A DNA stretch of 64,000 nucleotides, taken from IMG/VR virus record IMGVR_UViG_3300029922_000001, positions 248,001 to 312,000 of that record, one strand, 5' to 3'. Under the pieces are notes generated by a model. It did not search any database, was not told where the DNA came from, and saw only the letters and a program-made list of their open reading frames with translations. The stretch's first letter is position 1, and each line of letters opens with the position of its first letter. Positions 3,425-63,899 of the stretch are shown in pieces. Both the position numbers and the translations under genes were made by a program.

Positions 3425-3434
3425 AAGTACTCGG

Positions 3435-3524
3435 AGGGGCATACTAGAATCAAACTAGTTCATAACGCATTTGCTAGATCATTAACCTAGCAGTGCGTCG
3501 CGATTCTCATTTCGCCAATGCCCC
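3435..3524 (-). tRNA. tRNA-Cys(GCA)-like gene with a 17-nt hairpin insertion in the anticodon loop
   Basis: GGGGCAT/ATGCCCC acceptor, U73, stem ACGCA/TGCGT around the 24-nt loop CTGCTAGGTTAATGATCTAGCAAA. Confidence 0.8.
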
Positions 3525-4656: not shown

Positions 4657-4803
4657 TTATACCTTACGACGAATTCGTATGAGAGTATTATCTACTTCTT
4701 TTCTTGTGATACCTAAAAAAGCAGCAATTGCACGATAAGATTTATTTAAACCATAAGCAATATAAACCTTGGTTTCATTTTGAGTTAATTCTAAATTATT
4801 CAT
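4657..4803 (-). CDS. 48-aa stand-alone sigma-70 region 4-like HTH protein (not in ORF track)
   Basis: MNNLELTQNETKVYIAYGLNKSYRAIAAFLGITRKEVDNTLIRIRRKV; TGCTATAAT-7nt-ATG; resembles the SigH C-terminus. Confidence 0.7.
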   Translation of the reverse strand: MNNLELTQNETKVYIAYGLNKSYRAIAAFLGITRKEVDNTLIRIRRKV

Positions 4804-4828
4804 AAGTGTATTATAGCATATTTTCTCG

Positions 4829-4917
4829 CGGGAGCTTAGAGATTCGAACTCTAAAGGCGCTTTTTACACGCCTAGCTGTTTTCAAGACAGTTTACCGTCA
4901 CCAATGGCAGAACTCCC
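4829..4917 (-). tRNA. tRNA-Ser(TGA)
   Basis: Cloverleaf with CT-TGA-AA loop, long V-arm, G73. Confidence 0.9.
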
Positions 4918-4926
4918 GTATTATTT

Positions 4927-5013
4927 CGCGGTAAGTAAAATATTCGAATTCGATTCAAAGAATATGAAGACAAACTTTGTTTAATTATTGATTCTATTTT
5001 AGGTAGACTTAAC
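4927..5013 (-). pseudogene. possible decayed tRNA
   Basis: tRNA-sized spacer with GTTAAGT/ACTTACC ends, TTCGAAT and a G-CGAAA trailer; internal arms do not fold. Confidence 0.35.
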
Positions 5014-5025
5014 AATTAAACATCT

Positions 5026-5113
5026 CGAAGACACCAGAATCGAACTGGACTCGCTTTTTACACGAGCGAACAACTTTCCAGGTTGCCGTCATCACCATCA
5101 GACATTATCTTCC
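5026..5113 (-). tRNA. tRNA-Ser(GGA), 3' acceptor end imperfect
   Basis: GCAAC-CTGGAAA-GTTGT arm, long V-arm; the 3' end runs directly into CGAGA. Confidence 0.75.
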
Positions 5114-5125
5114 ATATTATCTCGG

Positions 5126-5198
5126 AGCGCCAAATTGGAATCGAACCAATTTCCTATTGCTTACCAAGCAATCGTTCACCCACATGAACTTTAAGCGC
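5126..5198 (-). tRNA. tRNA-Thr(GGT)
   Basis: ATTGC-TTGGTAA-GCAAT arm; complete cloverleaf. Confidence 0.9.
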
Positions 5199-5208
5199 AT
5201 ATATCTCG

Positions 5209-5282
5209 TGGAGGCTCAATAGAGAATCAAACTCTACTCTGCGGTTTACAAAACCGCTGCATCGTCACAATGCTTTAAAGCC
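5209..5282 (-). tRNA. tRNA-Thr(TGT), CCA encoded
   Basis: GCGGT-TTTGTAA-ACCGC arm; complete cloverleaf. Confidence 0.9.
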
Positions 5283-5295
5283 ATATTATCTCGTA

Positions 5296-5394
5296 AGCCT
5301 AGTATCTGATTCGAACAGATGATGTTTGTATTCTTACTTGTTCTATTTTTTAACACAACAAGGTAAGTGCAATCGACCGCTATGCAAACTAGGC
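5296..5394 (-). tRNA. tRNA-Thr(TGT)-like gene with an 18-nt insertion in the anticodon loop
   Basis: GCCTAGT/ACTAGGC acceptor, U73, CTTAC/GTAAG stem around the 25-nt loop CTTGT[TGTGTTAAAAAATAGAAC]AA. Confidence 0.7.
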
Positions 5395-5405
5395 ATTTTA
5401 TCTCG

Positions 5406-5494
5406 TGGAGGAAGGCAGCGGGATCGAACCGCAGACGTATTTCAGTCCGTATAGTTTAGCAAACTATCCTAATCGCCGTTTTAGATTACCTTCC
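5406..5494 (-). tRNA. tRNA-Ser(GCT), CCA encoded
   Basis: ATAGT-TTGCTAA-ACTAT arm, long V-arm. Confidence 0.9.
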
Positions 5495-5502
5495 ATTATC
5501 TC

Positions 5503-5586
5503 GGCTAACGGGGAGATTCAAACTCCCGAAGGTTTTCACCGATGCATTACGAGTGCATTCCAATTGATCAACTATGGGACGTTAGC
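5503..5586 (-). tRNA. tRNA-Thr(CGT) with an atypical long variable arm
   Basis: GCTAACG/CGTTAGC acceptor, ATGCA-CTCGTAA-TGCAT arm, V-arm GGT-GAAA-ACC. Confidence 0.8.
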
Positions 5587-5910
5587 ATTTAACATTTCTA
5601 CATATCTAACTAAAACCTGACCGTGACACCTTTCTTGTTCGCCCCAACCAGTTTTAGGTCTACAAAAGCATACCAATTTTTTATTATGTAAGGATTTTAC
5701 CTTATCTTTGAATATTAAATCAGTTTCTAATCTATTTTTTAGATATTTTTCATATTCTGGTAAAGTAGAACTAGGAACTTGACCTGGAGATAATACTATT
5801 GGATTGCCAAAATATCCACTCTGTCCTTTCCCTGCTCTACCTATGTAGACATATTCAGAATCTTGTTCCCAACCCTTGTTGAGATGATATAAATTTACTA
5901 CTTCAGTCAT
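5572..5910 (-). CDS. DUF4326-type protein
   Basis: VYIGR...FGNP...LHNKKLVCFCRP...CHGQVL. Confidence 0.8.
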   Translation of the reverse strand: MTEVVNLYHLNKGWEQDSEYVYIGRAGKGQSGYFGNPIVLSPGQVPSSTLPEYEKYLKNRLETDLIFKDKVKSLHNKKLVCFCRPKTGWGEQERCHGQVLVRYVEMLNANVP

Positions 5911-8404: not shown

Positions 8405-9382
8405 TTATACTTGAGCAAGTTCGGCTTGTAGCTCTTTAATGCGCTTTTGGAGTTCAAGTTTCTTTTTAAGTGTCGCTTCTTCTCTAAGCAAAGCTTGGAA
8501 TTCAGCATCAACTTCTTCCACTGCAACAGTCTCTAAAGCAACATGCTTCTTTATGGCTTTAGCTGCTTTAGGCATTTCTGTAGCCAAGATTGGTACATAT
8601 CCTCTTAGTATAAGAGTAAGACTTGTTGCATGATCTTCAATATCAATCCATTCTTTTTGACCAAAGGTTTGATTGGATCTGCTACCTTCAACAGTGCAAA
8701 CATCTTGTTCTCTTGATTCATTTAAAGATTTTGGCATAGCATTCGCAAATGAGTCTAAAGAATCCATTGACATGCTTGAAGCGGAATATGTTGGAGAACC
8801 AAAGCTTAATGAATTCAGTGAATTTACTGAATCTGAGCATAATCCTCTTACATTGCTTTTCATGGAAGATTGACCAATTAAAGCATTATTACTACCACAC
8901 CAGACTTCATCATGTCGTCTAGGGTAATGCTTGTAAGGGTATGAATAATCACGATACCAAGGATATGAATAATCATGATAATGATGATGATCTACTACGA
9001 TTGGAATGTAGACTGGTTGTGGTTTTTCTTTTTCTAACCAGAAGAAGGCTTCAACAACACCTTTGGAGCGGTCTTCATTAGAACCATTTTTTCCAAAATC
9101 AATAGCGTCATTACTGTCTAAAGCAGCTAATTTAAAGCATTTGTTGGTTTCATAGAAGCGTTCAAGATCAATTGCGCTGTTAGCGTTAATAATATATCCA
9201 TCACCGGATACATTTTCCCCGTCAATATGAATTTTGACCAAGGCTCTACGATTGTTTTTGTTTCTGAGGCGTAAACTATATTCTGATCCGAATGGAACTA
9301 GTACAGAATGATCGTTTCTCTCTGGGAGAAAGTCGTTTTGATTTTTGAGCTTGATAGCAAGCACGAAGTTTTTGTTATACAT
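8405..9382 (-). CDS. conserved hypothetical large-phage protein with C-terminal coiled coil
   Basis: MYNKNFVLAIK...PFGSEYSLRLRNKN...IHIDGENV; start corrected using the TATAAT box. Confidence 0.75.
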   Translation of the reverse strand: MYNKNFVLAIKLKNQNDFLPERNDHSVLVPFGSEYSLRLRNKNNRRALVKIHIDGENVSGDGYIINANSAIDLERFYETNKCFKLAALDSNDAIDFGKNGSNEDRSKGVVEAFFWLEKEKPQPVYIPIVVDHHHYHDYSYPWYRDYSYPYKHYPRRHDEVWCGSNNALIGQSSMKSNVRGLCSDSVNSLNSLSFGSPTYSASSMSMDSLDSFANAMPKSLNESREQDVCTVEGSRSNQTFGQKEWIDIEDHATSLTLILRGYVPILATEMPKAAKAIKKHVALETVAVEEVDAEFQALLREEATLKKKLELQKRIKELQAELAQV

Positions 9383-9592
9383 ATTTTTAACCATTATAAT
9401 CCTAACTCTTGTCCTCATGAGAGCGTGATTCGGCACCTTAATGGCGAGTGCCAAGGACAATTCTATTATACACCCGTTTTGAGGTTTTTTACCTTCGGAT
9501 TAAAAAACAGTCCAAACACAATAAAATTAATTATAATAAATTACCTTGTGAATAGGCTTGACAGTCTGAGGAATAGGAGGTATTATAACAAC

Positions 9593-10891
9593 ATGAGTAG
9601 CATTCTCGCTAGTAAGAAATACATTTATACGGATATCCAGGCGAATAACAATAAGTTCTGGAATATTGACCGCTATGACGATCATACAGTAATTACACGT
9701 TGGGGACGTGTTGGCGACAAAGAACAAAGCAAATCTTTCCCACATGGATCTGAAACTTCCGCAATTGCTTTTTTTAATCAAAAGTGTAGTGAAAAATCCA
9801 AGAAGGGTTATACCGAACAACGAACCATTGAATCCAATACTACCGTAAAGCAAACAACCGTTGCTTCATCCAATCTTGAAAGTATTGCTAAAAGACAGAT
9901 TCAAACTAATTCACCTGAACTAGATGCTTTGATTTCAAGGCTTACCAAAGCTAACATTCATAGCATTGTCGCAAACAGTAATATTAGCTATAACGATACA
10001 ACTGGTTTGTTTTCAACGCCATTAGGAATTATTGATGAAGATGCGATTTTGGAAGCTAGAGAACTTCTAGTGTCCATTAATTCTATTGTTCTCAATAGAG
10101 ACTTTGGAAATAAGGATTTTGCTGGAATCACCAATAAGTATTTTAGAATCGTTCCTACAGTTATCGGTAGATATCGTCAAGAACCTCAAGACCTATTCCC
10201 TAATAAGGAAACCGTTGTAAAGCAAAATGATCTTTTGGACTCACTTGAAGTCAGCTTGCAAACTGCTAAGGCAACCCCTGTAACTGCTACAACATCTGTT
10301 GAACCTGAAAAGAACATCTTTAATGTTAAGCTTCATGTGGTTGATGATCTTCCTGTTATTCAACGAATTACAGCCAAATATCAATCAACAATGAATCGTG
10401 GTCATCAGTGTTCCCATCTTGGTGTTAAGCGTGTTTATGAATTAGAAATTGGTGCTATGAAGACTGCTTTCGAAAATAAGGGTAAGCAAATTGGTGGTAT
10501 TCAAGAGTTGTGGCACGGTTCAAGAGTTGCCAATATTCTTTCTATTCTCTATAAGGGAATGATTATCCCACCTTCTAATTCTAGTTTTGTGGCTGGTCGT
10601 TTGTTTGGAGACGGTTTGTATTTTGCCAACCAAAGCACAAAGTCTCTTAATTATTCTTATGGATATTGGGATGCTAAAGGCAAGGACGAAAATTGCTTTA
10701 TGTTCCTTTGTGATGTAGCTATGGGCAAGCACTATACTCCTAAGTATTTACAATCCAATATTCCTGCTGGATATGATAGTTTCTGGGCTAAGGCTGGTAT
10801 TTCTGGCGTACAGAATGATGAAATCATCGTTCCACGTCTTTATCAAGCCAATCCTAGATATTTGATCGAATTCTCACCAGGTGGTAGATAA
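9593..10891 (+). CDS. WGR-domain PARP-like ADP-ribosyltransferase
   Basis: NNNKFW...RWGRVG (WGR); STPLG...TNKYFRIVP (regulatory domain); LWHGS, GDGLYFA and NDEIIV (H-Y-E triad); TTGACA-17-TATTAT promoter sets the start at 9593. Confidence 0.93.
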   Translation: MSSILASKKYIYTDIQANNNKFWNIDRYDDHTVITRWGRVGDKEQSKSFPHGSETSAIAFFNQKCSEKSKKGYTEQRTIESNTTVKQTTVASSNLESIAKRQIQTNSPELDALISRLTKANIHSIVANSNISYNDTTGLFSTPLGIIDEDAILEARELLVSINSIVLNRDFGNKDFAGITNKYFRIVPTVIGRYRQEPQDLFPNKETVVKQNDLLDSLEVSLQTAKATPVTATTSVEPEKNIFNVKLHVVDDLPVIQRITAKYQSTMNRGHQCSHLGVKRVYELEIGAMKTAFENKGKQIGGIQELWHGSRVANILSILYKGMIIPPSNSSFVAGRLFGDGLYFANQSTKSLNYSYGYWDAKGKDENCFMFLCDVAMGKHYTPKYLQSNIPAGYDSFWAKAGISGVQNDEIIVPRLYQANPRYLIEFSPGGR

Positions 10892-16781: not shown

Positions 16782-16841
16782 GCTTTATTATAAGGAAATA
16801 TTGATGGCTTTTACATGAATCAGTTATGGTATACTAACTCC

Positions 16842-18290
16842 ATGTTTGACACAGATCGTTTAATTCATTTAGAAAAGCTACAAGAAGCTGGTTTAAATCC
16901 ATTTGATAATTATGGATTTAAGATGACTTCACCAATTGGGTTATATCTTGATACTTTTAATGTATTGATTAATGCTGTTTGTTTTGATAATACACATAGT
17001 TTATGTGGTCGCATTATTTCTATGCGTATTATGGGTAATATGGCTTTTGTTGATATTTCCGATGGTTCTCACAAGGTCCAGGCTGTTTTCCGTAAGAACC
17101 TAATGGATGCTGACACTTATAAGGCATTAAGATACCTAGATGAAGGTGATCATATTGGCGTGACTGGCAATCCATTTCTTACCCAAGCTGGTGAGAAGTC
17201 AATTCTTGTTACAGAAATTAAGGTTCTAAGTAAGTGTCTTATCCCTTTACCAATTGGTAAGAGGAAGGATGGGGAAGTCTTTGATGCAGTTGTAGATCCA
17301 GATATTAGGCTTAGGCATCGTCATATTGACCTTGTAGCCAATCCAGATAATAGGGCGATGTTAATTGCACGTTCAAAGATGGTAAGCTGTATTAGGCGAT
17401 TTTTAGATCAAGAAGATTTTCTTGAAGTTGAAACACCTTTACTAACTGAGGTTGCTGGTGGAGCAAGTGCTAAGACATTTGATACTCATTATAATGCTTA
17501 TGATTTAGATATGCATCTTCGTATTTCTTTGGAAATTCCTTTGAAGAAGTTGATTTGTGGTGATATTCCTGCCGTTTATGAAATTGGTAAGGTTTTCCGC
17601 AATGAAGGTGCTGACGCAACTCATAATCCAGAATTTACACTTTTGGAATGGTATCGTGCGTATTCAACACCAGAAGAGGAAATGCAAAGGGTTCAAGATT
17701 TAGTTTCATATTTGATGCAAAAGTGGGATGCTGATCCTGCATGGGATGTAATTACTGTGCGTGATGCTATTTTAACCTATGTGCCTGATGTTTCCTGGTA
17801 TGATCTTGATGTTATTGAGAAAATGAGAGAACATGCTCGTAGAAATGGAATCCATGTAACAGATCAAGATACTATGGGGAAGATTGAAGAAAAGCTAGTC
17901 GCTAAGTTCGTTGAGCCTAATCTGTTATATCCCACATTCTTAACAGAACATCATATCAGTAATTCACCTTTAGCTAGAACAGCACCAGGGAAGCCTGATC
18001 GTGCTTATAGATTTGAAGCATATATTAATGGTTATGAAATCGCTAATGGTTATTCTGAGTTAAACAATGCAGTTGAACAAAAGGAACGATTAGAGGATCA
18101 AGTAGCTCAAAGAAATGGTGGAGACGCTGAAGCACAACCTTATGATCAAGATTTTATTTATGCTCTTGCCTCCGGTTGCCCTGCCGTAACGGGCGTGGGA
18201 ATCGGTCTAGATAGATTGGCAATGGTATTATATGGAGCAACACAAATTAGGCAAGTAATATTTTTCCCAACAATGAAGCATAGGAGTTAA
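16842..18290 (+). CDS. lysS: lysyl-tRNA synthetase (class II)
   Basis: OB-fold GRII..R..G..AFVD; EVETPLL; motif 2 FRNEGADATHNPEF; motif 3 GVGIGLDRL. Confidence 0.97.
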   Translation: MFDTDRLIHLEKLQEAGLNPFDNYGFKMTSPIGLYLDTFNVLINAVCFDNTHSLCGRIISMRIMGNMAFVDISDGSHKVQAVFRKNLMDADTYKALRYLDEGDHIGVTGNPFLTQAGEKSILVTEIKVLSKCLIPLPIGKRKDGEVFDAVVDPDIRLRHRHIDLVANPDNRAMLIARSKMVSCIRRFLDQEDFLEVETPLLTEVAGGASAKTFDTHYNAYDLDMHLRISLEIPLKKLICGDIPAVYEIGKVFRNEGADATHNPEFTLLEWYRAYSTPEEEMQRVQDLVSYLMQKWDADPAWDVITVRDAILTYVPDVSWYDLDVIEKMREHARRNGIHVTDQDTMGKIEEKLVAKFVEPNLLYPTFLTEHHISNSPLARTAPGKPDRAYRFEAYINGYEIANGYSELNNAVEQKERLEDQVAQRNGGDAEAQPYDQDFIYALASGCPAVTGVGIGLDRLAMVLYGATQIRQVIFFPTMKHRS

Positions 18291-25275: not shown

Positions 25276-25950
25276 TTAAATTATTACTCTCACTTTGGGT
25301 TTAACCCAAAGTGACTCAATAGTAAAATAAACAACAATACCTAAAGCTGGATTAATTTCATATTCATGCTCTCCATCTTCATTTATAACAGGTTGATCAT
25401 TATCATCATATAAATAAATATGCCCACGAACATCATCGGCAGGTAAACATTTAATTTTACTAACTTGTAAATCACCATAAACTTGTATATTTTTACATAC
25501 GGCTTCACGGTGAGCATCCTCAAACATGTTTAAGCCATCATCAAATAGTAATTCTTGGCGATTGTAACCAGCCTGATTAAGTGTTTGATAAATATAAACA
25601 TCTAATTGTCTAGATAAGCTTCTAATGGCTTTATTTGCACTAGACTCACTAAATAAAGCACCCATTCTTTCATCCCAAGGCAAATCACACTTTGGATCAC
25701 GCATTCTTACTGCTAATGAACATGCTATTTCAATAGGTTTAATACTGTCTAAGTCTATTGTTTTAATTTGTTGTGGTATATGAAAGCGACTATTAGATAA
25801 TGCCACAACGTCCATATTAATATATGAAGAATCTATGACTGTTAAAATACTTTTCCAAGTGTTGGTAATACCATCAAATTTTTCTTGAATAACTAATTCC
25901 TGTTGTTTAGTTGCTTCAATCCTATCATTTACATTTTTAAAGTAATTCAT
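25276..25950 (-). CDS. truncated, divergent capsid-protein-like paralog
   Basis: SLSRQLDVYIYQTLNQA aligns with RQIDT...INAA of the 41080 and 42459 proteins; LPADD...LGIVVY. Confidence 0.5.
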   Translation of the reverse strand: MNYFKNVNDRIEATKQQELVIQEKFDGITNTWKSILTVIDSSYINMDVVALSNSRFHIPQQIKTIDLDSIKPIEIACSLAVRMRDPKCDLPWDERMGALFSESSANKAIRSLSRQLDVYIYQTLNQAGYNRQELLFDDGLNMFEDAHREAVCKNIQVYGDLQVSKIKCLPADDVRGHIYLYDDNDQPVINEDGEHEYEINPALGIVVYFTIESLWVKPKVRVII

Positions 25951-26813
25951 ATATTATTATAAGTCATTTTATAATCATAATCATAAGCCTTAAACCACTT
26001 CCTGATAGCATTATCACTAACTCCATATTTCTTACCAATCTTAACCATTGATAAAGTTTTGTAATCTTCAATTAATTGTTCTAATGATGGTCTTTCTGCT
26101 TTTCGTGTATTTAATGCACGATCTTGTGAGTTTGGTAATACAATATTAAAGTATTTACATATTCTTATAATTTTACTTTCAGAACATTTAAATTGTTTGC
26201 CAATTAATTTTAATCCATTTTTATTAATCAATTGTTGGAGTTCTTCTTTGGTTAAATTATTATCATCTACCCAAATTTTATAATCTTTTTTTTGTCTTTC
26301 TTTAACCTCTTTTATTGATAAATGTTTTGCCCATAATTTGTTTTTAGATCCAAAATTATCAGTTTGACTATGACAGTTAGGACATAAAAATCTTAAATTA
26401 TCTTGTGTATTATGAGTGTAGTTTCCATCAACATGATCAACGTGTAATGTTATTTTCTTTCCTAACCAATCTTTATTGACAAAACATTCACTACCTTCAC
26501 ACTCATAAGGTCTTCCAGTTTCAATAAGAGCCCTAGTTAATAATTTAGATGATACTCTGTTATTTCCAAATTTTATATTTACTAAAATATCTTCGGCAGT
26601 TTTACGATTTACACTTTTCTTGCCTCTCATCCAGTTTTCACTATTGAAATGGTCTGTATTAATATTAAAATAATTAACTCTACGTTTAATGTGTGTTTGG
26701 CTACCACCAGCTTGTACAATATTTAGATTTCTTAAAACCCCTGCATAGGAAAAACTTTTATTTACCGCTTCTTCTAATATGTCTTTTGTGTATTTTTCTT
26801 TATATTTTCTCAT
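25947..26813 (-). CDS. HNH homing endonuclease with HTH tail
   Basis: LHVDHVDGNYTHN...LRFLCPNCHSQT; IGKKYGVSDNAIRKW. Confidence 0.92.
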   Translation of the reverse strand: MRKYKEKYTKDILEEAVNKSFSYAGVLRNLNIVQAGGSQTHIKRRVNYFNINTDHFNSENWMRGKKSVNRKTAEDILVNIKFGNNRVSSKLLTRALIETGRPYECEGSECFVNKDWLGKKITLHVDHVDGNYTHNTQDNLRFLCPNCHSQTDNFGSKNKLWAKHLSIKEVKERQKKDYKIWVDDNNLTKEELQQLINKNGLKLIGKQFKCSESKIIRICKYFNIVLPNSQDRALNTRKAERPSLEQLIEDYKTLSMVKIGKKYGVSDNAIRKWFKAYDYDYKMTYNNI

Positions 26814-26892
26814 ACTATTAATATACTGGAAGATACACTAAATTACCTTTAATTAAAGGTATAGGTTCAAATTTATAATAAAATTTATCTCG

Positions 26893-26973
26893 TACTAGGA
26901 AAGGGACTCGAACCCTCAAGGATCATTCGTTCTTAACGAAGTGGGTCTGCCATTTCCCATTATCCACCCTAGC
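26893..26973 (-). tRNA. tRNA-Leu(AAG)-like gene with a non-canonical core
   Basis: Extra GGATAA between acceptor and D-arm, complementary to ATCC in the short variable region; loop TT-AAG-AA; A73. Confidence 0.7.
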
Positions 26974-26986
26974 ATATTAATCTCGG

Positions 26987-27068
26987 TACTAGAGAAGGGA
27001 TTCGAACCCTCAAGGATTTTTGTTTCTAAAACAAAACGGTCTACCGATTCCACGTTATCCACCCTAGC
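26987..27068 (-). tRNA. tRNA-Leu(TAG)-like gene with the same non-canonical core
   Basis: GCTAGGGTGGATAA...ATCCTTGAGGGTTCGA shared with its neighbour; loop TT-TAG-AA; A73. Confidence 0.7.
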
Positions 27069-27078
27069 ATTTATCTCG

Positions 27079-27162
27079 TCCCGGCGAGTGGACTCGAACC
27101 ACCACGCCCTTTCAGGCAACAGATTTTGAGTCTGCCGCATCTACCAATTACACCACACCGGG
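27079..27162 (-). tRNA. tRNA-Leu(CAA)
   Basis: Canonical type II cloverleaf, CT-CAA-AA. Confidence 0.92.
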
Positions 27163-27181
27163 ATATTTCTCGTATAAGAAA

Positions 27182-27361
27182 TTAATTCTTATTTTGTGAA
27201 TCAAGTTGTCTTACTCTACTAAATAAAGCATCTCTCATTTCTTTGTTTTCACTTACTTCTTTAGCGTATGCACCCATCATATTTCTAAACATTTTTTGAC
27301 CTTCTTCAGTATTCATTGCTGATTCAATTATTTTCATTTTTTCAGGACTTGTTATAATCAT
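27182..27361 (-). CDS. 59-aa hypothetical protein inside the Leu array (not in ORF track)
   Basis: GGAG SD; MIITSPEKMKIIESAMNTEEGQKMFRN...DSQNKN*. Confidence 0.7.
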   Translation of the reverse strand: MIITSPEKMKIIESAMNTEEGQKMFRNMMGAYAKEVSENKEMRDALFSRVRQLDSQNKN

Positions 27362-27382
27362 ATTAATTCTCCAATATCTCGG

Positions 27383-27484
27383 TGAGCAAACAGGGACTTG
27401 AACCCTGATGACATTTTACTGTCGATGGGTTAGCAAAATTCTGATCTTGCTAAGCCCATTGCGTCTACATTTCGCCATTCGCCC
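27383..27484 (-). tRNA. tRNA-Leu(TAG)-like gene with an 18-nt hairpin insertion in the anticodon loop
   Basis: ATGGG/CCCAT stem around CTTAG[CAAGATCAGAATTTTGCT]AA; long V-arm; A73. Confidence 0.8.
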
Positions 27485-27493
27485 ATATTCTCG

Positions 27494-27579
27494 TGCGGAG
27501 TAAAAGATTTGAACTTTCACCTGTTGATAAGACAGAATGGGACCTTAGCCCATCGCGGCTACCATTACGCCAACCCCGC
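27494..27579 (-). tRNA. tRNA-Leu(AAG)
   Basis: ATGGG-CTAAGGT-CCCAT arm, long V-arm, A73. Confidence 0.85.
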
Positions 27580-27588
27580 ATATTCTCG

Positions 27589-27670
27589 TCCGGGCGAGAG
27601 GGTTTGAACCTCCATGTCTTGCGACGGCAGGTTTTAAACCTGCTGCGGCTACCAATTTCGCCACACCCGG
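27589..27670 (-). tRNA. tRNA-Leu(TAA)
   Basis: GCAGG-TTTAAAA-CCTGC arm, long V-arm. Confidence 0.92.
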
Positions 27671-27697
27671 ATATGTAACAACAATACTTAAAACAAC

Positions 27698-27736
27698 AAA
27701 AAAAAGCCTGATTAGGATCAGATCCCAACCAGGCTT
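27698..27736 (-). terminator. intrinsic terminator of the Leu leader (attenuator 3:4)
   Basis: AAGCCTGGTTGGGAT/ATCCTAATCAGGCTT stem plus T-tract, 27 nt before tRNA-Leu(TAA). Confidence 0.9.
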
Positions 27737-27757
27737 AACAAGTAAAATACAGTACTC

Positions 27758-27832
27758 TTATGCAGCTAGTTGGGTTCCTCCTAATAGTAGGAGGCTTGTT
27801 AAACCTTGTAGTTGCAAAGAATTCTTGTTCAC
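27758..27832 (-). CDS. 24-aa Leu-rich leader peptide (putative attenuator; not in ORF track)
   Basis: GTG start 6 nt after TGCTATAAT; MNKNSLQLQGLTSLLLLGGTQLAA*; 8 Leu codons. Confidence 0.88.
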   Translation of the reverse strand: MNKNSLQLQGLTSLLLLGGTQLAA

Positions 27833-27928
27833 GTATATATTATAGCATGATCCGAATGAAATTAACCATAATTTCTATAAATTATTTGAAAGAAGGAATT
27901 ATTCATATAGACATTGTAGATATTTAGT

Positions 27929-29275
27929 GTGAAACAAATTATTACAGCTAAATTAAAATTAGAAACAAATAAAGAACAATTTAAAGAATTAACTAATCTT
28001 AGTTTAGCTTATTGTGGCGCTTTGAATTTTGGCTCTAATAAAGCCTTTGAATTAGACAAAACTACTAATGCTAACTTATTGCACAAAAGTATATATCGAG
28101 AATGTCGTGATAAATTTGGATTACCATCACAATTAGCTTGTAGCGTTTCTAGATATGTTACTGCTTCTTATAAAACATTGTGGACAATTACCAATAAAAA
28201 TATTAAAGCAAGAAAAAACAAAGAAACTAAGAGAGTTTATAAAGGACTGAATAAAGCTCCAAAATATATATCAAGAACGACTATGTTTCAATATGGTAGA
28301 GATTTTACATTCAAGAAGGATCAACAAATTAGTATTATTACTCTTAATGGAAGAATTCTTCTAGATTATAAAGGATGGAATAAACATCTTAATTTAATTA
28401 AAGATGAAAATACCAAAATTGGTGGAGCTAAACTTTATTATGATAAAGCTAAGAAAACTTTCTATCTCTTAGTTAGTTTAGAAATAGAAACACAAGAAGA
28501 AAAACAAATTAACACAATAGGTATTGATTTGGGTCAAAGATATTTGGCTGTGGTAACTGATACACAAGATAATACATTGTTTATTCCTGGTAAGGAATGT
28601 ATTAATCAAGTTGGAAAATATCAACGAGTTCGTAGTAGTCTTCAAAAAAAGATTAAAACGAATAAGAAAAATGGTAAAGGCACTCGTTCTATAACTAGAA
28701 AATTAATCCAAGTTAAAGGACAAGAGAGACGGTATAGATTATCATTAAATCATCAAACAGCAAGTTCGATATTACAAAGATTTCCTAATTCAAATATAGG
28801 ATTAGAAAATCTTAAAGATATTAGAACAAGAACAGAAAGACATAGCAGTAAAAAAGATAGCAAAAAAAGAAAAGAAGCTAATCGTAATAAAGCTTCTTGG
28901 TCTTTTAATGAGTTACAACAATTAATAGAATATAAAGCTAATTTATATGGTAGTAAAATATTTAAAGTAGATGCCCATTATACATCTCAAATGTGTACTA
29001 AATGTGGTTATACTTCTAAAGAAAACAGACCTAAAAGTGGCTTGAATTTTATTTGTTGTAATTGTAATTTTAAATTACATGCTGATTTGATTGGAGCTAG
29101 AAATATAGCTATGAGAACATTGTTATCTAGACAAGATTTAGATAATAAGGGGCATTTATCAATTGTCCCAGTAAGCGGCAAAGCCGCTTTAGATACCTCG
29201 AACAGTGAAGTTAAAGCGGAATCCTTGAAAAAGTATTCTGAATTGAGATGGAGTTCGGAGGCAAACTTAACTTAA
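27929..29275 (+). CDS. tnpB: TnpB RNA-guided endonuclease (IS200/IS605 family)
   Basis: RuvC motifs GIDLG, GLENLK and HADLIGARNI; zinc finger YTSQMCTKCG...CCNC. Confidence 0.93.
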   Translation: MKQIITAKLKLETNKEQFKELTNLSLAYCGALNFGSNKAFELDKTTNANLLHKSIYRECRDKFGLPSQLACSVSRYVTASYKTLWTITNKNIKARKNKETKRVYKGLNKAPKYISRTTMFQYGRDFTFKKDQQISIITLNGRILLDYKGWNKHLNLIKDENTKIGGAKLYYDKAKKTFYLLVSLEIETQEEKQINTIGIDLGQRYLAVVTDTQDNTLFIPGKECINQVGKYQRVRSSLQKKIKTNKKNGKGTRSITRKLIQVKGQERRYRLSLNHQTASSILQRFPNSNIGLENLKDIRTRTERHSSKKDSKKRKEANRNKASWSFNELQQLIEYKANLYGSKIFKVDAHYTSQMCTKCGYTSKENRPKSGLNFICCNCNFKLHADLIGARNIAMRTLLSRQDLDNKGHLSIVPVSGKAALDTSNSEVKAESLKKYSELRWSSEANLT

Positions 29276-29341
29276 TTGCTAAGCATTTTGATAACGATCT
29301 TATTATACTCTTGTTTCTTCCTTTTTGCTATCTTTTCTAGA

Positions 29342-29602
29342 TTATTTTTGACTTATTTTATAATTCATATATTCTATAACTGGATCATCTAATAACTCCA
29401 TAATAACATTAAATTTTGTATTTATACCACCTGAAGCCTCAGCGAGTAGACCTTCAAATTGTGGATCAAATTGAAATAATTTACAAGGAGTCATAAGGTT
29501 CGATTTATTTTTTAATATAAATCTCACTTGCTCTTGTATCGTGTAGCCAATAATTATATTCATATATCCATTAGCTAAAATTTGTTTAGACTTTATAAGC
29601 AT
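29342..29602 (-). CDS. hypothetical protein
   Basis: ORF track. Confidence 0.6.
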   Translation of the reverse strand: MLIKSKQILANGYMNIIIGYTIQEQVRFILKNKSNLMTPCKLFQFDPQFEGLLAEASGGINTKFNVIMELLDDPVIEYMNYKISQK

Positions 29603-29619
29603 ATTACTCTAATACTAGA

Positions 29620-29928
29620 CTAAAGCCTTGATGACCTAACCTTACCACTCTTTTCTGGATTATTTCTATCAACAACATAAAATCTTCTTTGACGAAATGT
29701 TTCCTTGTGATGTTGCTTTCTAGTAACTTTCTCTTCATCGGAAATATCTACATCTAGAAAAACCTGATTCCACATATCGTAAATAGTTTTCTTTTCGTAG
29801 TCATACCATATACCTGTTTCAATACTCCATAGTCCACTTGTTTTAAGTTTAATAGTGGGAATATTTATTGATGCTAAATTTTCTGAAGTAATAGAATTTA
29901 TTTTATCGTTTAGTTGTGTGCCATTCAT
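29620..29928 (-). CDS. hypothetical protein
   Basis: ORF track. Confidence 0.65.
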   Translation of the reverse strand: MNGTQLNDKINSITSENLASINIPTIKLKTSGLWSIETGIWYDYEKKTIYDMWNQVFLDVDISDEEKVTRKQHHKETFRQRRFYVVDRNNPEKSGKVRSSRL

Positions 29929-33716: not shown

Positions 33717-34529
33717 ATGAATATAAAAGTTAGTGGAATATATAGAATTATAAACAAAATAAACAATAAATCATATGTAGGAAGTTCTACAGATATACAA
33801 GATAGATGGTGGAAACATAGAAAAATGTTAAAAAATAATAATCATTCTAATCCTCATTTACAGGCATCATATAATAAATATTCAAGTGTTGTTTTTGATT
33901 TTGAAATATTGCAATCTATGCCAGGGGCAACCACTAAAGAACTCCAAGAAAAAGAATTATCATGGATGTTATTTTTAAATGTACATAATAATAAAAATGG
34001 GTATAACATTAACGGAGTTGAAGGTTATAAAATAGGTTTTAAGCACACTGAAGAAACTAAAAAGAAAATAAGTGAATCTGTAAAAAACAGAACATACACA
34101 GAAGAACAATTGGAAAATTTAAGAAACAATTTAAGTAAAATAATTAACAATCCAGAAACGAAAAGGAAAATTTCAGAATCTAAAAAAGGAAAATTATTAA
34201 CAAAAGAACATAAAAGGAAAATTTCAGAATCTAAAAAAGGAAAATTATTAACAGAAGAACATAAAAGAAAAGTTGGTGATGGTAATCGCGGTAAAATAAT
34301 AAGCGAAGACACAAGAGAAAAACAAAAAATATCTATTTTAAACAATAAGGAATTTATGAACAAATTAATTAAAAAATGGATAATAATAAATCCTGATGGG
34401 GAAGAATATAAAATAGAAAATTTATCTCAATTTTGTAGAGATAATCAATTAAGAGATGGATGTATGTCTTTAGTTGCGCAAGGTAAAAGAAAATCACATA
34501 AAGGATGGAGTTGTTATGAAATTAAATAA
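33717..34529 (+). CDS. GIY-YIG homing endonuclease with NUMOD3 repeats
   Basis: [19 protein letters not shown]...RWWKH; [11 protein letters not shown] repeats. Confidence 0.93.
34161..34262 (+). repeat. 51-bp tandem duplication ([17 protein letters not shown] twice)
   Basis: Read directly from the sequence. Confidence 0.9.
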
Positions 34530-35180: not shown

Positions 35181-36421
35181 GTCAATTACCCACAGCTAAA
35201 GCAGTGGGCTTGTTACAACCGCGCTTTGCGCGGGAACAATAGGGATATTGACTAATCCCCTACATTGAATATTTAAGGAAGCATTATAATCAGCATTAGC
35301 AGCGAAGCTGCAAGATAAACATTTAAATTCACTCTGATTCTTCCTATTTTTCTTATTACAATATCCACAATGAGAACACGTCTGGGACGTGTATGCTGGA
35401 TTAACAAGAAAAACAGGAACACCTTGTTCCTTGGCTTTATATTCAATAAACGATCTAAGTTGAGCGAAGCTCCAACTTAATCTTTCATTACGATTAGCTT
35501 TTCTGACCGTTACTCTTTTATTGATTCCTTTTAACTCTTCTAGAGCTATACCAAATTGAGTGCCTTTAGCTTTATTAACTATTTCTTTGGAAATACAATG
35601 ATTAACATCTTTTCTAAATCTTGATTCTTTATTTCCAATAGTTTTAATTCTTTTCTTTGCAGAGCGTGTCCCACGCTTCTGTAATCTCGTTCTGTGATCA
35701 TGATATTTCTTTCTCTTATTTTCTATTTTATCAGAACTATAGATAGTATTATCAGAAGTAGTAGCAATATTTTTAACACCTAAATCGACTCCAATAATTC
35801 CTTTAGTATTATATTTTTCTTCAGTTGGAGTTGGAATATCAAGAGTACATAATAAGTAAAATTTATTATTTTGAAGTACTAGATCAACTTGACCTTTTCT
35901 AAATTTAAATAATTCATTATTCCATATTTGGATTGGAATATTCATTCTTCCTTCAATAGTCCAAATATTAACTATTTTATTATTTTTAAAAGTAATAACT
36001 CTGTCGTCATAGACGACAGCAGAAGTTTTCTTAAATGAATTAGGATATTTTCTATGTTTACTTATTTTATAAGAACAAGATACAACGTCAATAGCTCTAA
36101 TGGTTAATTGAGAAGAAAATTCTTTATATTTTTCTCTTGAAGGATGATAAACAATTTTTTGCAATTGATTTTTATGAAATTGCCCAACTTTAAAAGCTTC
36201 TTCAGAAAATTCATTACAAATTTGATTAAAGACATTCATCGTGCCCAAGAGGGCACGATATTGATTATCATCTGTATTTAGCTTAATCTTCAATATTTTC
36301 TTCACTATTAGTGTTATACATATTAATTAATGATATTCCTTCTTTTTGGTAAATATTTATTGAAAATATTTGGTTCGATTCCTCCCACGGCTGAAGACCG
36401 TGGGCTTCCTCTCACATTATC
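35181..36421 (-). mobile_element. IS200/IS605-family tnpB-only element (IS1341-like)
   Basis: Left-end hairpin GAAGCCCACGG-TCTTCAG-CCGTGGGAGG; right end CAAGCCCACTGCTTTAGCTGTGGGTAATTGAC; inserted after TTCAC. Confidence 0.85.
35196..36305 (-). CDS. tnpB: TnpB RNA-guided endonuclease
   Basis: GVDLGVKNIA, ALEEL, YTSQTCSHCG, CLSC...NADYNASLNI. Confidence 0.95.
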   Translation of the reverse strand: MKKILKIKLNTDDNQYRALLGTMNVFNQICNEFSEEAFKVGQFHKNQLQKIVYHPSREKYKEFSSQLTIRAIDVVSCSYKISKHRKYPNSFKKTSAVVYDDRVITFKNNKIVNIWTIEGRMNIPIQIWNNELFKFRKGQVDLVLQNNKFYLLCTLDIPTPTEEKYNTKGIIGVDLGVKNIATTSDNTIYSSDKIENKRKKYHDHRTRLQKRGTRSAKKRIKTIGNKESRFRKDVNHCISKEIVNKAKGTQFGIALEELKGINKRVTVRKANRNERLSWSFAQLRSFIEYKAKEQGVPVFLVNPAYTSQTCSHCGYCNKKNRKNQSEFKCLSCSFAANADYNASLNIQCRGLVNIPIVPAQSAVVTSPLL

Positions 36422-45573: not shown

Positions 45574-45927
45574 GGGCTCGTAAGGGAATCGACATGTTGC
45601 ATATATTGATGAACTTGAGTGAGAGATTACCCTTGGCTCTCTAAAAATGGGTAGAAAACATAAACGGCAAATCATATGCTTATGTAGGTTAATTCCTACC
45701 GCAAAAAATAAAGGTTAGTTGAGGACACTTTATTGAGCGTTGAAAAAATTCAACTACGCTATTAGGGTTGGTGGACCTTGGACCTGAAATAGTTAAATTA
45801 ATCAAGTATCCGGTTGCAGCGGTTTGATTTATACCAACATGCTTCCTATTAAATAAATCTACGCTCATAAAAAATAATTATTGGTATATCAGTAATGGAA
45901 ACGGCTTCGAGTGCCGTCGGGTCCACC
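45574..45927 (+). ncRNA. ssrA: tmRNA
   Basis: 5' GGGCTCG...ATCGAC; 3' ACGGC-TTCGAGT-GCCGT-CGGGTCC-A-CC with G3:U70; tag frame GGC AAA TCA TAT GCT TAT GTA GGT TAA at 45666-45692; TGGTATAAT promoter. Confidence 0.9.
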
Positions 45928-62395: not shown

Positions 62396-62740
62396 ATGAT
62401 CTTAACTGATATCGAAATTTATAGTTGTTGTATTTTTGGACAAAATTATACATTTATTGAACACTCCAAAAAGAATATTAAATTATGGAAACAACTTCTC
62501 GTTGCTTTATCTGAAAGAAATATTCGTTTTGAAATTAATTCATCTGAAGGTAATGATAAATACAATGATGACTGTTATTGTTTTCTTAATGATTATAAAA
62601 CTACAATTTATGTGTTAGATAATTACAGTATTTGCTATCCTTTGATGGATGGAGAATCATGTGATTGGGAAATCGGATCATTTAAGAAATTAATGAATTT
62701 TATTGATAATTTTAAAGATCATCCAGCTAGAAAGATTTGA
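62396..62740 (+). CDS. hypothetical protein
   Basis: TGTGGTATGCT upstream. Confidence 0.6.
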   Translation: MILTDIEIYSCCIFGQNYTFIEHSKKNIKLWKQLLVALSERNIRFEINSSEGNDKYNDDCYCFLNDYKTTIYVLDNYSICYPLMDGESCDWEIGSFKKLMNFIDNFKDHPARKI

Positions 62741-62762
62741 TCTAAGGTATACTGTTTTCATT

Positions 62763-63899
62763 ATGAAACGAATCGGAGAATTTCCACAAAAAGAAGAAGT
62801 GCTTAAGCTATTGAGGACGACTGAAAAATCGCTTGTTTGTAAACTTGGTGTCGATCCTACAGCAACTGAGGTTACTTTGGGGTGGGCTGTCGTTTTACGC
62901 GAACTAAAGCGTTTACAAGTGTGTGGTCACAGTATCACATTAATTATTGGCGATTTTACGGCTGGCATTGGTGATCCTACAGGTAAGAGCAAAACTCGTG
63001 TACCATTGACACACCAACAAATTAATGATAATGTCAATGCGTTATTACCACAGATTTTTACTATTTTAGATCCTACAAAGACTTCTGTTAAGTTTAATTC
63101 TGATTGGTTGGCTTGTAAGTCATTTGCTGAAATGATGCGTATTATGGCAAATATTACTGTTCAACAAGCTTTGAATCGTAATGACTTCCAGAATCGTTTA
63201 GAAGACAATGCACCCGTAGGATTACATGAAATTATGTACCCTGTTTGTCAGGCTTTGGATTCGGTACATATTTGGGCAGATATTGAAATTGGTGGAGAAG
63301 ATCAATTATTTAATGTTATGATGGGTAGAGATTTAATGAAGCAAATGGGTATGAAACCTCAGTTGCCGTTACTTTTCCCATTGCTTTTAGGTGTTGACGG
63401 TACGCATAAAATGAGCCAAAGTCTTGGTAATTTTATTAGTATTCGTGATACTCCTGAAGATATGTTTGGTAAAACGATGTCGATTCCAGATAGTGCTATG
63501 CCTAACTGGTTCCATTTGCTTACTGATATTTCTTTTGAGTCTGCACAGAAGGAAAATCCTAGAGATACTAAATTAATTTTGGCTGAAGAGATTGTACGTC
63601 AATTCCACGGATTTGAAGCAGCAACTTTGGCAAAAATTAATTTCATCAATAGGTTTACTCATAAGATTGTAATGCCTACTGAAATTCTGGGTTTTTCTAG
63701 AGAGGATGCAAATGAATCTTGGATGACAATTCTTGAAGAAGCTTTACCAGGAGAAAGCAAGAATAACCTTAAAAGATTGGTTCAACATAAGGGAGTGAGG
63801 TTGAACGGTACACCAATTGAGAGTGTGAAGGATTTCCCAGAGGAAGGGATTTTGACAATTGGGAAACTAAGAGCGTGGAAAGTAGAGAGTTACGATTAA
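62763..63899 (+). CDS. tyrS: tyrosyl-tRNA synthetase (HIGH motif appears as TLGW, KMSKS as KMSQS)
   Basis: KLGVDPTA, IIGDFTAGIGDPTGKSKTR, HEIMYPVCQALDS, EIGGEDQLFN, KMSQSLGN, S4-like tail. Confidence 0.95.
   Translation: MKRIGEFPQKEEVLKLLRTTEKSLVCKLGVDPTATEVTLGWAVVLRELKRLQVCGHSITLIIGDFTAGIGDPTGKSKTRVPLTHQQINDNVNALLPQIFTILDPTKTSVKFNSDWLACKSFAEMMRIMANITVQQALNRNDFQNRLEDNAPVGLHEIMYPVCQALDSVHIWADIEIGGEDQLFNVMMGRDLMKQMGMKPQLPLLFPLLLGVDGTHKMSQSLGNFISIRDTPEDMFGKTMSIPDSAMPNWFHLLTDISFESAQKENPRDTKLILAEEIVRQFHGFEAATLAKINFINRFTHKIVMPTEILGFSREDANESWMTILEEALPGESKNNLKRLVQHKGVRLNGTPIESVKDFPEEGILTIGKLRAWKVESYD

Follow-up and report, generated by a model that had tools for sequence, protein, structure and literature searches.

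Codon-matched leaders resembling attenuators precede tRNA arrays in a huge phage and its relatives

Why should a tiny reading frame rich in Leu codons, followed by a strong stop signal, stand directly ahead of an array of Leu-type tRNA genes in a phage? The locus lies in a 64,000-nt stretch (hereafter the window) of a 441-kb phage, IMG/VR record IMGVR_UViG_3300029922_000001. An earlier note, made from the sequence alone, had proposed that it is a leader peptide attenuator in which ribosome stalling at Leu codons, for example when host tRNA-Leu is depleted or cleaved by a defence nuclease, lets transcription run into the phage's own tRNA-Leu genes. To test this, we first read the features directly and found all of them on the minus strand (Table 1). 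The leader contains eight Leu codons (TTG, four CTA, two TTA and CTC), four of them in an LLLL run, and CTA and CTC make up only 13% and 5%, respectively, of the Leu codons in the long ORFs of the phage. The observation in the note was thus confirmed, albeit with three qualifications. First, only three of the six array genes are canonical tRNA-Leu genes, while the other three are class-II Leu-type genes detected only by Rfam or relaxed ARAGORN. Second, the -10 box is not native but lies inside a TnpB insertion element. Third, the GTG start is the junction scar of that insertion.

Table 1. Positions of the features in and around the leader and the tRNA array (window coordinates)
Position	Strand	Feature	Remark
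27758..27832	-	Leader ORF, 24 codons plus stop, (G/A)TG AAC AAG ... GCA TAA, encoding MNKNSLQLQGLTSLLLLGGTQLAA	Conserved with an ATG start at L017:9615-9689
27832	-	GTG start	Preceded by ATATAC, the 6 nt after the TGCTATAAT box
27782..27793	-	Control codons CTC CTA CTA TTA (LLLL run)	Four further Leu codons at codons 6, 8, 11 and 22
27777..27794	-	Hairpin CCUCCUA-CUAU-UAGGAGG enclosing the Leu run	Possible RNA polymerase pause hairpin
27802..27822	-	Segment 1, 5' side of the long leader helix	Pairs with segment 2 when no ribosome is present; minimum-energy fold of the 82-95 nt prefix, -22 to -25 kcal/mol
27762..27778	-	Segment 2, GGAACCCAACUAGCUGC, at the 3' end of the ORF just before the stop codon	Pairs with segment 1 or with the terminator 5' arm (antiterminator)
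27766..27774	-	CCCAACTAG	Complementary to CTGGTTGGG
27724..27732	-	CTGGTTGGG	Complementary to CCCAACTAG
27795..27809	-	Second upstream partner of the terminator 5' arm	
27720..27736	-	Segment 3, terminator 5' arm AAGCCUGGUUGGGAUC	
27696..27719	-	Segment 4, terminator 3' arm, plus U8 tract at 27696-27703	In L017 a U-to-C change turns a G-U pair into G-C
27704..27736	-	Terminator stem	15 pairs, loop of 3, followed by T8; -21.7 kcal/mol
26892..27670	-	Array of six class-II Leu-type tRNA genes	First tRNA starts at 27670, about 25 nt after the terminator
27588..27670	-	tRNA gene, UAA	
27493..27579	-	tRNA gene, AAG	
27381..27484	-	tRNA gene with an 18-nt anticodon-loop insertion	
27182..27361	-	59-aa ORF inside the array	
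27078..27162	-	tRNA gene, CAA	
about 26985..27068	-	tRNA gene, UAG-type	Anticodon read by eye; supported by a compensatory anticodon-stem change in the L017 homologue
about 26892..26973	-	tRNA gene, AAG-type	Anticodon read by eye from the loop alone; the L017 counterpart reads CAA
27832..29291	+	IS605-family tnpB-only insertion element, 1,460 bp with a 1-nt ambiguity	Inserted in TTCA|TAACG, inside the leader's ATG
27929..29275	+	tnpB gene, 448 aa	PF07282 at 7e-20, PF01385 at 2e-8; 2213 homologues, the closest at 66% identity
27839..27847	-	Outward-facing TGCTATAAT box at the IS left end	Mimics the phage's own gene-start signal
29292..29310	-	Displaced ancestral upstream sequence GAGTATAATAAGATCGTTA, TATAAT at 29307-29302	In L017 it abuts the leader ATG

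Next, we asked whether such an arrangement exceeds chance. Of 483 ORFs of 20 to 35 codons in all six frames of the window, the leader is the only one with at least one-third Leu and an LLLL run. Furthermore, among 470 other tRNAs in about 1 Mb of fetched loci, none has a run of four or more cognate codons within 250 nt upstream. The region upstream of the terminator pairs with the terminator 5' arm at -18.3 kcal/mol, a value reached by 2.9% of 2000 shuffles, and the whole RNA folds at -47.1 kcal/mol (z = -5.4). The alternative 1:2, 2:3 and 3:4 helices have comparable stabilities of -25, -20.0 and -21.7 kcal/mol, respectively.

Since tnpB starts 97 nt away on the other strand, and since IS200-type elements carry left-end hairpins that block read-in transcription, we first suspected that the hairpin and the ORF were the left end of the TnpB element, as a subterminal hairpin or read-in terminator, and had nothing to do with the tRNAs. 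This was refuted for the leader and the terminator by an empty site in a relative without the element (locus L017), which shows that the IS ends at 27832. In L017, the leader, the terminator and the array are present without any tnpB, the leader starts with ATG, and only the TGCTATAAT box of the window copy is IS-borne. In addition, the nearest TnpB homologues have unrelated upstream DNA. We consider this reading virtually excluded. The inserted element resembles IS200/IS605 tnpB-only elements (IS1341 type) with TnpB-guided homing: its TnpB has RuvC and Cas12f-like TNB domains, it inserted without target duplication 3' of a TTCA-like motif, and its right end (TTGA) resembles the target. However, it is not part of the attenuator but a secondary insertion that split the start codon, replaced the native upstream signal with its own TATAAT box and turned ATG into GTG. 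Since GTG is never used at the motif-linked gene starts of this phage (0 of 5 with GTG against 34 of 39 with ATG), the copy in the window is probably impaired.

The loss of the Leu bias at orthologous loci that keep the array had been named in advance as an outcome that would speak against the attenuator. We observed the opposite. The L017 leader has 9 Leu among 24 codons and stands with its terminator directly before an array of eight Leu tRNA genes, although this array is reshuffled and begins with a different tRNA. The identity between the window and L017 leaders (95%) lies, however, within the range of the flanking blocks (83 to 99%). Independent support came from a sequence-divergent phage (L120). 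Its leader, MKNINNSLLLSLLSLLLRERVRCSVV, has 8 Leu among 26 codons, uses five different Leu codons, and carries Leu codons in a CUCC-UUCG-GGAG hairpin analogous to that of the window. CGAGUGAG inside this ORF pairs with the terminator arm CUCACUCG at -14.4 kcal/mol, a value reached by 0.85% of shuffles, the full RNA has a z of -6.6, and a Leu-only array follows. At least eight further places, among 12 contigs carrying the L120 protein, have leaders identical to that of L120.

Elsewhere in the same phage genome (locus L204), a perfect TTGACA-16-TATAAT promoter is followed by a 41-codon ORF containing YPYHPYPYHP, a 16-bp terminator with its stem at L204:2022-2059, and an array of only His, Tyr, Pro, Tyr and Pro tRNA genes. 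This is the longest run made only of H, Y and P in 3.2 million six-frame residues, and the only 8-of-8 cognate window among 194 arrays. A relative (L233) keeps YPYHPYPYHP exactly, with one synonymous change in a Tyr codon. A 15-nt indel inside the ORF is in frame, while the three 1-nt indels all fall outside it, and the array is reshuffled but still contains only His, Pro and Tyr genes. Thus, the control codons are retained in relatives while other leader sequence drifts. Against the attenuator, the Ser/Thr/Cys array in the window has no leader or terminator, and a Lys example (L224) is weak, with 4 Lys in 12 codons and no clear terminator. A YYHHYYY run at about 37330 on the minus strand looked like another leader, but it is the antisense of a gene start and has no ORF.

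These comparisons bear on the possibility that the ORF encodes, or once encoded, a small hydrophobic or signal-peptide-like protein that is Leu-rich because it is hydrophobic, followed by an ordinary operon-end terminator and an array expressed by leaky readthrough. Indeed, the peptide has a basic N terminus, a hydrophobic core and a QLAA end, the layout of a signal peptide, and coincidence is also favoured by a conservation against L017 that is not above the flanking background and by the lack of a leader at the Ser/Thr/Cys array. However, the L120 peptide shares only the N-terminal KN..NS and the Leu runs, its C terminus being charged and unrelated, and YPYHPYPYHP before a His/Tyr/Pro array cannot be explained by hydrophobicity. 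Moreover, the terminator arm complementarities are unlikely by chance (P about 0.03 in the window and about 0.009 in L120). We regard coincidence as improbable. We also considered a type I toxin-like hydrophobic peptide: no antisense promoter or partner was identified and the peptide is not conserved between the window and L120 beyond the Leu runs, which speaks neither clearly for nor clearly against this identity; its function was not assayed.

Another possibility is an untranslated structured RNA, such as a stable 3'-UTR, a small RNA or a processing element ending the upstream operon, with an open frame incidental to the CCUCC/GGAGG hairpin. The folds are very stable (z = -5.4 to -6.6), the Leu leaders have no Shine-Dalgarno sequence, so that translation must be leaderless or nearly so, the GUG start of the window copy is buried in a helix, and the overlap of the Leu run with a hairpin arm constrains the sequence. 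On the other hand, the match between residues and array identity exists only in one reading frame and holds in five leaders of three unrelated sequences, and the indel pattern in L204 and L233 respects the frame. Furthermore, no Rfam family matches, and the leaders sit behind gene-start signals. In L017 and L120 this is the signal of this phage group, GGTAnAAT followed by 5 to 9 nt and ATG. L204 and L224 carry sigma-70 promoters instead, and the L204 and L233 leaders sit behind perfect sigma-70 promoters with an AAGG Shine-Dalgarno-like site. We consider an untranslated RNA unlikely.

To find out whether the element belongs to a described family, we searched Rfam at gathering and permissive thresholds and detected only tRNAs and tmRNA. 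No leader or T-box family matched at E up to 10 (window positions 26700 to 29700) or at E up to 1 (L120, L204 and L224). A blastn search against 50,697 phage records gave no match, and exact-pattern scans of IMG/VR for the terminator and the hairpin returned only the source contig plus unrelated terminators. TnpB homologues had unrelated flanks, close-relative scans with two flanking proteins found only the source contig, and homologue searches with the proteins just upstream of the leaders found nothing beyond the known lineages. A degenerate D-arm pattern scan of viral and genome collections returned 40 chance hits with no tRNAs. Literature searches, which had been suggested as a check of novelty, found no precedent.

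In the enterobacterial leu operon leader (leuL; Rfam Leu_leader RF00512), a short ORF also has four consecutive Leu codons that include the rare CUA and CUC, the control codons lie in the 5' segment of a 1:2 helix, the stop codon is next to segment 2, and a 2:3 antiterminator competes with a 3:4 intrinsic terminator, as is proposed for the phage leader. Here, in contrast, there is no sequence or covariance-model similarity, the host is a phage, the start is of the leaderless type, the regulated genes are tRNA-Leu genes instead of leucine biosynthesis genes, and the leader uses four or five different Leu codons, matching the isoacceptors in the array. Like the multivalent ilvGMEDA leader (Leu/Val/Ile codons) and thr leader (Thr/Ile codons), the L204/L233 leader carries control codons for several amino acids, but the set is defined by the identities of the downstream tRNA genes and not by a shared biosynthetic pathway. 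The pheST attenuator (pheM leader) and T-box riboswitches are likewise feedback controls in which decoding or charging status sets readthrough into a gene of the translation apparatus. However, their targets are aminoacyl-tRNA synthetase genes, and T-box elements bind uncharged tRNA directly and use no leader peptide.

Folding with the leader masked had been put forward as a way to probe the proposed switch. In ribosome-masked folding, the terminator 5' arm was sequestered more with the ribosome on the control codons than on the stop codon in 4 of 5 leaders. This is a trend only, since equilibrium folding also sequesters the arm with no ribosome present (0.57 to 0.76) and shows no switch in the window copy, in which the second upstream partner of the arm blurs the classical logic. 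The alternative helix is present in the window and L017 and significant in L120, but the antiterminator duplex was no better than shuffles in L204 (P = 0.37), and in L120 the stop codon lies about 15 nt beyond segment 2. Whether a mutually exclusive antiterminator that uses a segment covered by a ribosome at the stop codon operates is therefore left undecided by these data; base-pair covariation was not analyzed because only two or three distinct sequences exist per leader type. The lack of a clean switch leaves room for a leader that is translated and senses the cognate codons but whose stalling changes the processing or stability of the tRNA precursor, or recruits tmRNA or nucleases. In line with this, the phage encodes its own tmRNA and aminoacyl-tRNA synthetases, and conserved CGAGAWAWAT spacers suggest dedicated precursor processing. 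Still, every well-supported case (window, L017, L120, L204 and L233) has a canonical intrinsic terminator with a 15- to 16-bp stem and a U tract 14 to 27 nt before the first tRNA, with no promoter in between, and two have perfect sigma-70 promoters, which points to a terminator-sensitive host polymerase. We consider this alternative output unlikely.

We conclude, with reasonable confidence, that the conserved unit is a ribosome-mediated, leader-peptide transcription attenuator placed in front of a phage tRNA-Leu array. In this model, a short transcript would start at a phage-type TATAAT signal a few nucleotides before the start codon, and its first 24 codons would be translated. When charged tRNA-Leu is plentiful, the ribosome would run to the UAA and sit on segment 2, the terminator would form, and RNA polymerase would stop before the first tRNA gene. 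When decoding of CUC, CUA or UUA is slow, the ribosome would stall over the Leu run and segment 1, segment 2 would be free to pair with the terminator 5' arm, and polymerase would read into the six Leu-type tRNA genes, whose products relieve the stall. This would be negative feedback on tRNA supply, and the same phage would use the same design, with a Tyr/Pro/His leader, for its His/Tyr/Pro array. Our analysis demonstrates the sequence anatomy, the alternative structures, the conservation in relatives and the recurrence with other amino acids, whereas translation of the leader, stalling, termination and readthrough are inferred; the phages are uncultured metagenome contigs, and neither transcripts nor the dependence of readthrough on leader translation and charged tRNA were measured. 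The interpretation given in the note is thus supported in part: its core idea held, but the promoter is not the attenuator's own, the GTG copy is probably impaired, and the proposed trigger, a host defence nuclease, is untested speculation. The literature on tRNA cleavage by Schlafen, PARIS and retron systems gave no Leu-specific bacterial nuclease to link to.

A broader reading, which we consider somewhat more likely than not, is that a lineage of huge phages from peat, bog and soil sorts its tRNA genes into arrays by amino acid and gates each array with a leader peptide whose control codons match its tRNAs: Leu for one, Tyr/Pro/His for another and possibly Lys for a third. The phage would then measure, codon by codon, whether the infected cell can still decode, and switch on its own tRNAs only when it cannot, be it after host tRNA depletion, after cleavage by tRNA-targeting defences, or in a host with a mismatched tRNA pool. 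This would be the first attenuator class whose output is tRNA itself.

Leader-peptide attenuation has been a textbook mechanism for fifty years, but only for amino acid biosynthesis operons and a few synthetase genes. Here, the same logic appears to close a loop directly on tRNA supply, and it does so in a virus. If true, it would explain why some huge phages sort tRNA genes by amino acid, and it would provide compact natural sensors of decoding capacity for specific codons, along with a natural mutant in which a TnpB element sits inside the leader's start codon. It would also give a concrete mechanism for on-demand phage tRNA expression, which bears on the question of whether phage tRNAs serve codon compensation or escape from tRNA-cleaving defences.

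The window belongs to IMGVR_UViG_3300029922_000001, a phage contig of 441,498 bp with about 32% G+C. The elements listed in the earlier note were all found on the minus strand, and its observation therefore holds. In the 24-codon ORF, which encodes MNKNSLQLQGLTSLLLLGGTQLAA, eight codons specify Leu. ARAGORN called three canonical tRNA-Leu genes downstream (UAA, AAG, and CAA), and Rfam and relaxed ARAGORN added three more class-II Leu-type genes, one of them with an 18-nt insertion in the anticodon loop. The note's description of six Leu-type tRNAs is thus fair. Three tRNA genes of the window carry such hairpin-forming insertions of 17 to 18 nt, which are mini-intron-like and far too short for group I introns, and their anticodon assignments are ambiguous. 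The window also encodes a tmRNA (tag GKSYAYVG), two aminoacyl-tRNA synthetases, a PARP-like protein with a WGR domain, and a second, unrelated TnpB element. The coordinates are collected in the table.

Coordinates of the features described in the text (window unless another contig is named)
Feature	Coordinates	Strand	Remarks
TGCTATAAT box	27847-27839	minus	six bases before GTG; IS-borne
GTG start of the leader	27832	minus
Leader ORF, 24 codons	ends at 27758	minus	encodes MNKNSLQLQGLTSLLLLGGTQLAA
Leu run CTC-CTA-CTA-TTA	27793-27782	minus
Hairpin CCTCCTA/TAGGAGG	27794-27777	minus
9-nt complementarity	27774-27766 with 27732-27724	minus
Second upstream partner of the terminator 5' arm	27809-27795
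Terminator, 15 bp	27736-27704	minus	U8 tract
tRNA-Leu(UAA) gene, start	27670	minus
TnpB-only IS605-family element	27832-29291		1,460 bp, one-base ambiguity
tnpB ORF	27929-29275	plus	PF07282 at 7e-20, PF01385
Displaced native TATAAT	29307-29302
86-aa gene next to the IS right end	29342-29602
tRNA genes with anticodon-loop insertions	3433-3524, 5296-5394, 27381-27484	minus	17-18 nt
tRNA genes with CGAGAWAWAT(G) spacers	4800-5600, 26890-27670; L204, L224
Gene starts with the TATAAT motif (examples)	25950, 29928, 32069, 39883, 44588, 45186, 50866, 53952; also L120
HNH endonuclease ORF	25947-26813	minus	directly downstream of the Leu array
GIY-YIG/NUMOD3 ORF	33717-34529	plus	further on
PARP-like protein with WGR domain; class II (Asp/Lys/Asn-type) and class I (Tyr/Trp-type) aminoacyl-tRNA synthetases; tmRNA; second TnpB element	9308-10891, 16815-18290, 62703-63899, 45574-45927, 35196-36305
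First tRNA gene of the L017 Leu array	L017:9767-9841		75 nt, anticodon AAG
Putative Lys leader and array	L224:1437-2399
Spacer between tRNA-Pro and tRNA-Leu, 157 nt	L092:1350-1506, L113, L145, L056, L147		unrelated metagenome contigs

To test whether this arrangement exceeds chance, we examined 483 ORFs of 20 to 35 codons in all six frames of the window. The leader was the only one with at least one-third Leu and an LLLL run. Furthermore, among 470 tRNAs in about 1 Mb of unrelated loci, none had four consecutive cognate codons in an open frame within 250 nt upstream. The RNA from 27835 to 27696 folds at -47.1 kcal/mol (z = -5.4). Prefix folding revealed three competing helices of similar strength: a 5' leader helix (1:2) at about -25 kcal/mol, an antiterminator (2:3) at -20.0 kcal/mol, and the terminator (3:4) at -21.7 kcal/mol. 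The complementarity of the upstream region to the 5' arm of the terminator was reached by 2.9% of dinucleotide shuffles.

Since a tnpB ORF lies next to the leader on the plus strand, we first suspected that the leader was the left end of this IS605-family element. Cluster look-ups then led to two relatives: L016, a 521-kb contig identical to the window in this region, and L017, a 34-kb contig that is syntenic at 83-99% identity but lacks tnpB. In L017, the orthologue of the window's 102-aa gene stops, and 10 nt later the leader begins with ATG. It encodes MNKNSLQLLGLASLLLLGGTQLAA, with nine Leu, and is followed by the same terminator and then by eight Leu-type tRNA genes in a different order. 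The first of these genes is a class-I-shaped tRNA with a Leu anticodon and no long variable arm. Base-by-base comparison placed the insertion in the site TTCA|TAACG, which on the leader's strand is inside the ATG. Thus, the TGCTATAAT box belongs to the IS and the G of the GTG is the terminal base of the IS, while the leader, terminator, and array are native phage sequence. This refutes the IS left end as the origin of the leader, and it also refutes the assumption in the earlier note that the promoter is the attenuator's own. The 86-aa gene next to the right end of the IS is absent from L017, and the DNA downstream of this gene repeats the 3' end of the neighboring 102-aa gene. No gene at the place of the HNH endonuclease ORF appears in the gene calls of the syntenic region of L017, so this ORF is probably a mobile homing endonuclease.

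Next, we analyzed the gene-start signal of the phage. In the window, TATAAT is followed by ATG at a sharply peaked spacing (N5, 11 times; N6, 21 times; N7, 7 times) against a background of 1-3 per offset. Of the 159 TATAAT sites, 39 show this spacing, and 34 of these 39 ATGs open ORFs of at least 50 aa. About 40% of genes start in this way. The consensus is rGGTATAAT-nnAnnY-ATGA, with a pyrimidine at -1, A at +1, and no Shine-Dalgarno sequence, and the same box precedes the tmRNA gene. We take this as favoring, by inference, a -10-only promoter that produces leaderless mRNAs, which suggests that such mRNAs are widespread in this phage group. In L017, the leader has GGGTATAAT-N9-ATG, with the box overlapping the upstream stop codon. 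In L120, a 31-kb Trout Bog contig, it has GGTAAAT-ATAACA-ATG, and other genes of that phage use the same motif. The outward-facing, IS-borne box in the window reproduces the canonical N6 spacing, but with GTG, and none of the five motif-linked GTGs in the window opens a real gene. The window's copy is therefore probably poorly translated.

L120 was found by a tRNA T-arm pattern scan of metagenomes and provides an independent replication for leucine. On its minus strand, MKNINNSLLLSLLSLLLRERVRCSVV follows a gene stop and the start motif. It has eight Leu, encoded by CTA, TTA, CTT, TTG, and CTC, and the last Leu codons sit in a CUCC-UUCG-GGAG hairpin. Inside the ORF, CGAGUGAG is complementary to CUCACUCG in the 5' arm of a different, strong terminator, with a duplex of -14.4 kcal/mol that was reached by 0.85% of shuffles. 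The whole RNA folds at -55.7 kcal/mol (z = -6.6), and in the truncated RNA the minimum-energy fold forms the antiterminator. A Leu-only array begins 14 nt after the terminator (UAG, UAA, a CAA-type gene, GAG, and then UAA after a small ORF). The nucleotide sequence is unrelated to that of the window's leader, yet the architecture is the same. Retention of the Leu bias together with the array in related loci had been set in advance by the earlier note as a test of its reading, and this is the outcome that we observed.

A scan for the tRNA-plus-spacer signature of the phage retrieved two other arrays of the 441-kb contig, L204 and L224. In the window, L204, and L224, tRNA genes lack an encoded CCA and are separated by a conserved spacer, CGAGAWAWAT(G), which may be a precursor-processing signal; the L120 tRNAs instead encode CCA and have a different spacer. 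L204 has a perfect TTGACA-16-TATAAT promoter and an AAGG site nine bases before ATG, and its ORF encodes MKAINTNMNSEMNEVNANVNTTSAYPYHPYPYHPKWRNTLV. A 16-bp terminator with a U tract follows, and the first tRNA-like gene begins about 24 nt later. The array contains His(GUG), Tyr, Pro, Tyr, and Pro, and nothing else. The ten-residue run of the leader contains only Tyr, Pro, and His and is the longest such run in 3.2 million six-frame residues of all DNA retrieved. It is also the only 8-of-8 cognate window among 194 arrays tested. The counterpart in the L017 phage, L233 (a 295-kb scaffold from the same sample), keeps YPYHPYPYHP with one synonymous change. It carries a 15-nt in-frame deletion elsewhere in the ORF, while all three 1-nt indels fall outside the ORF. 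Its array is reshuffled but still holds only His, Pro, and Tyr genes, seven in all.

The evidence for the third array, L224, is weak. A perfect sigma-70 promoter (TTGACA-18-TATAAT) precedes a 12-codon ORF, MKTMDLKLKRKR, and then an array of Lys(UUU), an amber-suppressor-type tRNA(CUA), an extra tRNA, Lys(CUU), and Gln(UUG). It may be a Lys leader, but four Lys codons in an AT-rich genome are not significant, and no clear terminator is present. The Ser/Thr/Cys array in the window has no leader at all. In unrelated metagenome contigs with amino-acid-sorted arrays (Arg, Pro, and Leu), the spacer between tRNA-Pro and tRNA-Leu has an unusual order, with a T-arm and 3' acceptor half first, then a short linker, and then a 5' acceptor half and D-arm, which is the arrangement of a circularly permuted tRNA gene.

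The geometry in the window and L017 fits the classical model. The Leu run starts 19 nt before segment 2, and the stop codon lies 2-6 nt after it. A ribosome at the stop codon would therefore cover segment 2, while one stalled at the first Leu codons of the run would leave it free. Equilibrium folding with a masked 28-nt footprint gave a consistent but modest trend. Sequestration of the terminator's 5' arm with the ribosome on the control codons versus the stop codon was 0.84 versus 0.34 in L017, 0.70-0.78 versus about 0.5 in L204 and L233, and 0.86 versus 0.78 in the window copy, for which a second upstream partner of the arm exists. In L120, it was 0.64 on the control codons, 0.12-0.29 on the codons after the Leu run, and 0.51 on the stop. 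Since sequestration was also high without a ribosome (0.57-0.76), the modeling neither proves nor disproves the switch. The sigma-70 promoters of L204 and L224 imply transcription by the host polymerase, which obeys intrinsic terminators.

In our reading, this is functionally ribosome-mediated attenuation as in leuL, and the Tyr/Pro/His leader is multivalent as in ilvGMEDA or thr. The nearest cases in which the translation apparatus is the target are the pheST attenuator and T-box elements. The element is not a member of any curated RNA family, and full-text literature searches revealed no report of a leader-peptide attenuator controlling tRNA genes, in phages or in bacteria; we are not aware of one. 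It differs from the established mechanism in its target, tRNA genes. We are fairly confident in the attenuator reading, and the interpretation in the earlier note is partly supported. The sequence anatomy, the competing helices, and the recurrence of matched leaders were read from the sequences, whereas translation, stalling, and termination are inferred without direct evidence, and homologues were too few for covariation analysis.

In the window, the attenuator is a natural insertion mutant. The TnpB element split the ATG, displaced the native TATAAT, and left a GTG behind an IS-borne TATAAT box. The sequence flanking the IS right end (TAACGATCTTATTATAC) together with the TTCA flank is what a TnpB guide and target-adjacent motif would recognize in IS-free genomes such as L017; this would be the standard homing logic of these elements, although targeting was not examined here. 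The same allele occurs in several samples, so the phage tolerates it.
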